The position numbers were made by a program, and so were the translations under genes. This document shows positions 48,201 through 51,200 of a DNA stretch of 64,000 nt, piece after piece (the first letter of the stretch is position 1; every line of letters starts with the position of its first letter). Source of the DNA: Bugula neritina (Eukaryota > Animalia > Bryozoa); the NCBI GenBank assembly GCA_964035545.1, contig OZ037768.1:22353319-22417318 (forward strand). The letters run 5' to 3'. The notes under the pieces were generated by a model. The model did no database searches and was not told the DNA's origin. It saw only the letters and a program-made list of their open reading frames with translations.

Positions 48201-51200
48201 GAGTATAGACAGAGTATAGAGAGAGTATAGACAGAGTATAGACAGAGTATAGAGAGAGTATAGAGAGAGTATAGAGAGAGTATAGAGAGAGTATAGACAG
48301 AGTATAGACAGAGTATATACAGAATATACACTAGCCCTGCAGGTAAACACAGGTAAACGCACTCACCTTGCAAGCGACGGCAAAGGCTTTGAGGGGGTTT
48401 GTGCCCCCTATACAGGATTCTGTATCGTATTTCAGGTCCTCCATGAACATGTTGTAGATACGTCTCTGGAATGCAGACATCTTTATCATCAACACCCACT
48501 CTTGTTTGAGAGGTAAGTTATTCATCAGCACTTTGTGATTACGTCTGCGTAAAGTGAAAGGTCATTATAGTACGTACTGTAATATCTCACAGCTGCATAT
48601 GGAAACTAGTAAGATATGGTATGTGATGGATAGTAACTAGATGGAATACTATATGACTATATCATAATATCATGTATGATAGAACTTAAAATAAAAATAA
48701 AATCAATACAAATGACAGCTGATAGACAAAGCAACACGAAATCTTGGTTATTACCATGCAGAGAGGGAGATTTACAATCATATATGATTTCAACATTGAA
48801 GGTAACTTCCAACGACTGAGAAAACAGACACCTACGAAATATCTTTACCAATAAAGTTATGAAATAACATATCGGAGTTATCTCACATGACAAAAGTTTT
48901 ATTATTCTGGTATAAAGCGAGAGTTACGACACCTTTGCACGAATCCACACAGCAAAGTGTGCAGGACGTGAGCTCTGTATTTCATCAGCTTGACGTCTTG
49001 CTGCGTGCTGTCGGCGCACTGCCCGTTGGATATTGGCCTCTCGAACATGTTACTGAACTCGACCTTTGACCCTAGGAAGTTGGGCCTCACAAAGTCCACC
49101 ATACACCAGTACTCTATGAGATTGTTCTGTAAAGGGTACCCTGTAAGCACCACCCGCCTTCTGCAATACAAAAAATGTAAATTAATTCTTTTCATAATTT
49201 ACGACTTCTGTGACCTTAGTGATAGGCATAGTATTGTTTCATACATATATATATATATATATATATATATATATATATATATATATATATATATATATAT
49301 ATATATATATATATATTTATATATATATATACACACAAGCGTGTGTATATTATAATTCAATCTGTGTACAGCAGATGTTTCGGGATTTGTCCCCTCATCA
49401 GCACAGAACTGAGTAGTATGGCTCACATATTTATAATGAATGAAAGTAATGTTTCTATCAAAGTATGTTTAAAATGCGGGTGAATTCGAGGTGAGTGCTC
49501 AAGTAACTCGAGACCACATGGATGCCCCCGCTTTCCAAATCAGCACTGAAGTCTTCCCATTTTTATACTGAATAAAACAAGATGTCTCCACACTAGTTCT
49601 ATTCCCCGCATTCTAATCACCAACTTACTTTGTGTTGATCTGTTTGAGAGATTTGGAGATTCCTGCGTGACTGTTCTTGATTCGGTGTCCTTCATCACAT
49701 ATGACTAAGTCTGGCCCAGGATCTAACAGCGCCTGCTGCATATCTACAACAAGTGTAATCAGCAGTAAGTTAACAGTGTCTGCTGCATATCTACATCAAG
49801 TGTAATCAGCAGTAAGTTAACAGCACTCGCTGCATATCTACAACAAGTGTAATCAGCAGTAAGTTAACAGCACTCGCTGCATATCTACATCAAGTGTAAT
49901 CAGCAGTAAGCATCTACCATAAACTTCAAAGACAGCCAGAAAAGCTTATTCGGAAGGAATTCTGAAATTGAACCATTGTTAAGGAATCGTCTTTCCACCA
50001 GCCGTTAGCGATAAGGCAACTGTCCATACCTGACTGTAGCCCAGAATTCTTCTCCTCAAGGTCAATGTCTATGAGCTCGGGGCCGGCATTAGCTCGACGT
50101 TTCCTAGTTTTGGTTTTCCTGGTGGCCAGCAGTCTGAACATTTCATAGCCCAGGAGTAAGACGCCGCCATTGCTAGTCCACTCCTCTATTACCTGCGAAA
50201 AGACACACCAGACTATCACGACCAACATCCAGGCACATGCTTACAACTCCAACCCTCAGTTTGAAATTAAAAATCCGGTTTTTGACAAAATCTCAACTTC
50301 TACAACACACAGTCTTTGATCCATGAGGTAAAAATAGCAAATCTAAGTGAAAACTAGAGAGTTATTTATATAGTCAAAATGGCGGACTATACTCTACACC
50401 CAAAATATAACCCAACATTATGATAACATATAGCAGTACCTGGGCTCGGGCTCCCACTGTTTTGTGTGTGTCGTTGATGTAAAACAGTTTGAACGACCTT
50501 GGAGTTACCTCCTCTGTGGGAATCCCCTAAAACAACATTTTGTAATTAAATGTTTCTTAAAAATCAGCCAATTAAATAACTGGTTATAAGAAGGAATACA
50601 CATTTGTATGATTGAATGATTAGCAATACTGTGACAGTGATGTGACAGTAGTTGGATAGTAGTGGGACAGAGTGAGTGGTGTGACATAATATGATGGAGT
50701 TGTGACATAGTGTCACAACTCCATCACATTATGACGGTTAGCAATACTGTGACAGTAGTGTGACCGTAATGTGACAATAATGTGATGGAGTTGTGACATA
50801 GTGTCACGACAGCTAACCTGTGAATTAGCTGCAGTTGGTAACCACATGTCAAATTCATTAATCCAGTTCTGAAGAGTGTTTATAGGCACTATGATGAGCA
50901 CCCGCCTGGCCTCGGTGTGTCTCATGAACATGTCTGTGAATGCAACCACCTGCAGGGTCTTGCCAAGCCCCATACTGTGTGCCAGGATACAACCAAACCC
51001 CTGGCTATTCTTAAACCTTTCCAGGGATTCAACTAGACTGTCGTAGAGAAATCTTATTCCACCAATCTGCATAGAGATAGTATAAGTAATATAATATGTT
51101 AAAAAATGTAATACATATGCATAATGTATTATTATACTTGTACGTATGCATGCTACAAATATACTATAATATTATACACGCTATATTATACACGCTATAT

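Follow-up and report, generated by a model that had tools for sequence, protein, structure and literature searches.

A hammerhead motif in an intron of a RAD54L2/ARIP4-type helicase gene of Bugula neritina as the probable passenger of a truncated retrozyme copy

What is a hammerhead ribozyme motif doing in an intron of a helicase gene, and does it work for that gene or only travel with it? The motif lies on the minus strand at 49356..49414 of the window, by which we mean the whole stretch of 64,000 nucleotides of Bugula neritina DNA that was analysed. Read directly from 49414 down to 49356, it begins with ACUCAGU and continues with the 5′ strand of stem I (UCUGUG, 49407-49402), the core CUGAUGA (49401-49395), the stem II hairpin GGGG-ACAAA-UCCC (49394-49382), GAA (49381-49379), the stem III hairpin ACA-UCUGC-UGU (49378-49368), A17 (49367) and the 3′ strand of stem I (CACAGA, 49366-49361), ending in UUGAA. 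For 49412..49357 of the minus strand these letters are exactly those given by an earlier, sequence-only reading, which had noted the core, the three helices and the GUA triplet. The topology is that of a type I hammerhead, with loops closing helices II and III and helix I open; helix II has 4 bp, helix III 3 bp and helix I 6 bp, with 4 bp more beyond a bulge. This extension of stem I, also part of the earlier reading, holds pair by pair, as beyond the bulged U come G.U, A-U, C-G and U-A. The cleavage triplet GUA conforms to the N-U-H rule and places the predicted cut at 49367|49366.

The invariant core (C3 U4 G5 A6 N7 G8 A9 ... G12 A13 A14) is complete, the A15.1-U16.1 and G10.1-C11.1 pairs are present, and all of these agree with the consensus of R1, a covariance model that we built from 23 other hammerheads of the repeat family described below, with the window row left out. 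R1 matches 49414..49356 end to end with 79.1 bits (E 2.8e-21), its only other match in the window being a core-less hairpin at 17 bits. A deliberately loose generic descriptor, demanding the core and minimum lengths of 3 bp for helix II, 2 bp for helix III and 4 bp for helix I, matches the 64-kb window once, at this very site, compared with 0.007 matches per dinucleotide shuffle. The hammerhead motif in this intron is real and beyond chance.

The host intron (49161..49628, minus strand) is 468 nt long, 70% A+T, and runs from GTAAGT to TTGCAG. Upstream of it, the 3′ part of an exon at 49629..49700 (minus strand) encodes, by direct reading, ...CDEGHRIKN..., the SNF2 motif II, with DEGH at ~49690 and a frame that continues across the intron. 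The downstream exon (48902..49160, minus strand) covers the region of SNF2 motif III and matches PF00176 at E 2e-12. With the helicase exons searched singly for relatives and domains, the downstream exon returned 259 relatives, several of them named RAD54-like protein 2 or ARIP4, and another exon of the gene also matched PF00176. By this homology the host gene is a RAD54L2/ARIP4-type SNF2 helicase, in keeping with the earlier description of a RAD54L2 intron of ~470 nt after the DEGH exon. The hammerhead begins at intron position 221 and lies in sense orientation, on the same strand as the flanking exons, its predicted cut preceding the 3′ splice site by ~205 nt. Its downstream side, 49246..49356, consists of a degenerate junction (ATTATAATATACACACGCTTGTGTG) and two (TA)n tracts (49331-49318 and 49315-49246), 84 nt of (TA)n in total, so that the 3′ end of the element runs into a microsatellite; the (TA)n behind the motif had likewise been noticed. 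Introns of the same helicase gene also hold long stretches that resemble ORFs and whose translations show periodic peptide repeats (45718-46121, 47859-48499 and 51096-51656); these look like minisatellite tandem repeats and not like coding sequence. A pure (GA)n/(CT)n microsatellite of ~260 nt occupies 52988-53254 of the window.

Where does the motif come from? The 25-mer CTGATGAGGGGACAAATCCCGAAAC from the hammerhead core, allowed up to 3 mismatches, has 663 matches in the 216-Mb assembly and none in a reversed control, so that the further genomic copies for which the earlier reading had suggested looking do exist. They belong to a family with a unit of 271/272 nt, which at the sampled loci occurs solo or as head-to-tail arrays with a maximum of 5 units, the copies being mostly 95-100% alike. 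The unit is non-coding, with a longest open stretch of 45 codons in the trimer. Its copies share a common 3′ end, ...GU(C/A)|CACAGATTGAG(A/G)TAT, which leads straight into (TA)n, and have ragged 5′ ends at unit positions 1, 12, 13, 51, 69, 72, 94 and onwards to 233; they cluster at 12-13, where the distance to the 3′ end is exactly one unit length. In a position-ordered sample of 26 family insertions, 23 have (TA)≥4 within 40 nt 3′ of the unit, as opposed to 0.6% of random 40-mers from the window. Young copies have GUC as their cleavage triplet, and the most diverged ones sampled have GUA. Helix III has 4 bp in the family, and its strand ACAGCUGCUGU is almost self-complementary in tandem units. 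The family also forms inverted partial pairs, for example C5:9208046-9208101(-) with 9208134-9208191(+); head-to-head inverted copies were seen at C5:9208046-9208191 and at C2:33418463-33418628, a layout that has been described for Penelope-like insertions.

The copy in the window (49357..49512, minus strand) aligns with unit positions ~127-271 and carries a 10-nt tail, CACAGATTGA; it is a 5′-truncated solo copy, 79% identical over 158 nt (BLAST, E 7e-27) to a unit from L039, in an alignment that covers unit positions ~127-281. Its GUA triplet is common to the most diverged sampled copies (L002, L004, L037, L046, L048 and L050). Elsewhere in the window, 26 nt at 14408-14433 match unit positions 178-203 at 88% (E 0.003), which may be a family fragment or a chance match.

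The layout of the family strongly supports its assignment to a known kind of element, the animal non-LTR retrozymes. These are defined by type I hammerheads in tandem repeats of 150-450 bp that are expressed as circular RNAs (PMC7229834), and they have been described as derived from, or related to, the pLTRs of Penelope-like elements (bioRxiv 10.64898/2026.07.22.740005). Mammals are reported to lack retrozymes of this kind. As in the published animal examples (PMC7229834), the non-coding unit falls within ~150-450 bp, holds one type I hammerhead and occurs both in tandem and solo; its GC content is below one half (43%), its monomer RNA is highly structured, with a minimum free energy of -105.5 kcal/mol (z = -8.3), and a fixed 3′ end, variable 5′ truncation and many dispersed copies mark it as reverse-transcribed. 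It departs from them in a near-absolute preference for (TA)n targets, the word 'microsatellite' being absent from the text of that paper, and the window copy differs from them as a 156-nt truncated solo fragment. Thus, the earlier view of the motif as a retroelement remnant is strongly supported, the window holding an ordinary relic, a 5′-truncated copy of a 271-nt hammerhead repeat with the layout of animal retrozymes.

Taken together, we consider it very probable that 49512..49357 on the minus strand is a dead-on-arrival, 5′-truncated retrozyme copy whose hammerhead is a passenger in the intron, and whose uneven divergence, treated below, reflects an older sister lineage. Published work on such elements suggests how it may have arrived. 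Transcripts of tandem units would be cut into monomers by the type I hammerhead that each unit carries, and host tRNA ligase would circularise the monomers. The reverse transcriptase of a retrotransposon, probably Penelope-like, could then copy this RNA into nicked (TA)n DNA, and copying would start just downstream of the cleavage site, at AUAU. Such a start would explain the constant 3′ end, the ragged 5′ ends and the presence of a whole hammerhead even in very short copies; the ribozyme would always be retained in family copies since copying begins just past its cleavage site. In one such event, the window copy would have landed in sense orientation in a (TA)n tract inside the RAD54L2/ARIP4 intron. 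By itself the locus matters little, being one more dispersed retrozyme copy, and intronic copies are common in one published survey, in which 42-44% of the retrozyme copies of Xenopus were intronic (bioRxiv 10.64898/2026.07.22.740005). The family as a whole, however, offers an unusually clean picture of hammerhead RNA that appears to have been reverse-transcribed into (TA)n microsatellites.

Could the hammerhead, once landed, still cut its host transcript? Several features of the window copy suggest that it is probably a weak monomeric ribozyme. A private change, G15.4→U, costs helix III its fourth pair and leaves 3 bp; it also gives rise to CAUC, which can pair with GAUG in the core as a competing GAUG/CAUC helix. 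In folding calculations, with this change the best hammerhead-compatible fold lies 5.8 instead of 2.9 kcal/mol above the best fold. In addition, helix I has its U.U internal loop closed by a T→A change; loop-loop contacts are used by fast natural hammerheads. The dimeric mode of tandem units would be unavailable to the window copy, which has no second copy in cis. The short stem III, the competing helix and the missing partner copy together argue for poor activity as a monomer.

Dimers are a requirement in the hammerheads of amphibian satellite 2, whose helix III has only 1-2 bp. These resemble the present family in being type I hammerheads in tandem repeats some hundreds of bp long, and differ from it in helix III, which here has 4 bp in the family and 3 bp in the window copy. 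The general statement that type I hammerheads with a short stem III often cleave poorly as monomers, made in the sequence-only reading, holds for amphibian retrozymes; those of invertebrates are reported to cleave efficiently (PMC7229834). On these grounds the window hammerhead may cut a small share of the pre-mRNAs at 49367|49366, and in a short, quickly spliced intron such a cut should be largely harmless. As the predicted site is ~205 nt from the 3′ splice site, the downstream exon would be made within seconds, and the race would be with splicing itself. Where the published discussion touches on this point, introns are said still to splice when a hammerhead cuts them slowly, and splicing to be aborted when the ribozyme is fast (PMC2995048, with reference to Dye 2006 and Fong 2009). 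We found no evidence that the hammerhead serves the helicase gene, and regard it as a passenger.

One feature of the window copy nevertheless calls for an explanation. Compared with the family majority, it differs at 33 of 103 positions in the body (32%) and at only 2 of 47 in the hammerhead (4%), a contrast with a Fisher p of 1.2e-4 and a binomial probability of 3e-6. Decay is similar in both parts (3.3% vs 2.3%) in 34 other full copies, none of which exceeds 10/103 in the body; this sets the window copy apart as a discrete outlier instead of placing it at the end of a continuum. Nor does the genome hide a large class of copies with decayed body and intact ribozyme, since a body 25-mer from just upstream of the ribozyme has 540 genomic matches vs 663 for the ribozyme 25-mer, a difference that fits ~17% of copies being 5′-truncated past the body 25-mer. 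For an intact hammerhead to survive by chance at ~30% decay would take some 10^5 such copies. The likeliest explanation, judged from these comparisons, is an older low-copy sister lineage that would share a conserved ribozyme module with the family. This requires a lineage with no other copy detectable in our DNA and 30-mer searches: a 118-nt DNA search and two 30-mers at up to 3 mismatches, directed at sister copies of the diverged body, found only the window itself. Short-tract gene conversion is a further conceivable cause. A conserved block of 16 of 17 positions at the 5′ end of the window copy was considered as evidence for a conserved module and rejected, as by a rough count it is not significant when position is allowed for. 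With 32% in the body and 4% in the ribozyme, the uneven decay is in any case a cheap lead.

The same contrast is the main support for an alternative in which the copy decayed in place while selection kept the hammerhead, so that cutting of the nascent RAD54L2 transcript would tune expression, a role put forward for the CPEB3 ribozyme and for the intronic HH9/HH10 hammerheads of amniotes. Speaking for this are also the even decay of both parts in the other full copies, the sense orientation of the hammerhead and the failure to find a sister copy of the diverged body in the genome. The body changes, moreover, lean from GC to AT (0.35 vs 0.15 per site), which mildly favours in-place decay and is what such decay would yield in an intron of 70% A+T. 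We nonetheless consider a domesticated ribozyme unlikely. Against it stand the private G15.4→U change, through which stem III becomes weaker and an inactive fold is favoured, and the T→A change in the internal loop of stem I, which is thereby closed; the equivalent intron of a distant orthologue (L054, exon identity 76% at the nucleotide level), the only orthologue compared, has no hammerhead. Conservation of the ribozyme module between related lineages yields the same pattern without any selection by the host, and the site was, after all, chosen for its intact-looking hammerhead.

If the domesticated reading were true, the hammerhead would be a co-transcriptional brake on the helicase mRNA and an invertebrate parallel to the intronic hammerheads of amniotes and to the CPEB3 ribozyme, with its origin from a retroelement still legible. 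The amniote hammerheads in question, HH9 and HH10, were reportedly described by de la Pena and Garcia-Robles in 2010. Like them and like the HDV-like ribozyme of CPEB3, a conserved intronic self-cleaving motif (PMC10919898), the motif in the window is a sense-strand, here predicted, self-cleaving element of presumed retroelement origin in an intron of a conserved gene. While those motifs are conserved at orthologous positions in many species, however, the one in the window sits in a recognisable repeat with hundreds of paralogues.

A different origin, as a pseudo-LTR fragment of an autonomous Penelope-like element instead of a non-autonomous retrozyme, is more improbable still. There are likenesses: hammerheads in Penelope-like elements were reportedly described by Cervera and de la Pena in 2014, and the present motif resembles them in being a minimal type I hammerhead near the 3′ end of its element (PMC8557442). 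Penelope-like elements carry such hammerheads in their pLTRs, undergo 5′ truncation and form tandem and inverted partial copies, and some of their clades have an insertion bias for (TA)n (PMC8557442); the family shares the tandem and inverted partial copies, among them the pair on C5 given above, as well as the 5′ truncation and the microsatellite bias. Yet the body of the window copy, throughout its aligned length, fits the non-coding unit of 271 nt, which is found in head-to-tail arrays and has no ORF, and, unlike Penelope-like elements, the unit lacks an RT/GIY-YIG ORF, with no RT ORF adjoining any of ~50 sampled copies. The Naiad clade, Penelope-like elements that target (TA)n, is reported to be without hammerheads (PMC8557442), whereas the family described here has them.

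In favouring a retrozyme copy we still infer, from the literature and from the style of insertion, a putative Penelope-like parent that would have supplied the reverse transcriptase. The sequence-only reading had pointed to Penelope-like elements and retrozymes alike as the typical carriers of such minimal hammerheads: the retrozyme layout bore this out, and the Penelope-like parent was looked for and not found. A whole-genome search for a GIY-YIG partner with PF01541 matched only an SLX1-like exon (L055, C1:24630658-24630858), so that Penelope-type endonucleases, if present in the genome, escape this model. The best 30 RVT_1 loci are long-ORF elements without hammerheads and mostly without (TA)n tracts. 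As an observation in its own right, one RT family (L060-L082) has many copies that share an RVT_1 score of 143.3 bits, the open frame measuring exactly 961 aa in a dozen of these, and looks like a recently active retrotransposon; no hammerhead was found within ~1.5 kb of its RT matches.

The sequence-only reading had also looked to published hammerhead covariance models and to covarying stems for confirmation, and on both counts the outcome was blank. With the Rfam 15 models for hammerheads (types I and III, HH9, HH10 and II), none matched the window hammerhead at gathering or at E≤10, whether in the whole window, in 301 nt or in 86 nt, and the sole related match at the site was RAGATH-1-hammerhead, at 15.4 bits compared with a gathering score of 56.3. 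A canonical family unit (L039:1400-1900), serving as positive control, was likewise without any Rfam hammerhead match, so that for the 271/272-nt family this test is uninformative. Within the family, 88% of cells pair, and the covariation score equals the shuffled mean, the only informative helix change being G.U to G-C or the reverse at the top of helix II; a family of copies so much alike is too young to covary. The reading of the motif as a chance resemblance in an A+T-rich intron, for which the missing Rfam match at the site and a minimum-free-energy fold different from the hammerhead fold might be cited, is next to inconceivable in view of the descriptor expectation of 0.007 per window and the 79 bits of R1, and is refuted by homology, at E 7e-27, to the 271/272-nt family with its more than 600 copies. 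As the Rfam hammerhead models miss this family, standard annotation would leave several hundred ribozyme motifs in the genome unmarked.

Of two metagenome scans for the hammerhead, one was blank and the other yielded a match, due to chance, in a GC-rich contig. In the genome itself, at least three further families with hammerhead-like cores were seen, in which helix II is quite different in sequence and still pairs; examples are C8:10554810(-)/10558156(+), C4:21676314(-)/21676992(+) and C6:1094372(-)/1095050(+). Several of these further families are found as inverted pairs with a spacing of 678 nt or 3.3 kb, and such pairs are candidates for Penelope-like pLTR structures or for other retrozymes.
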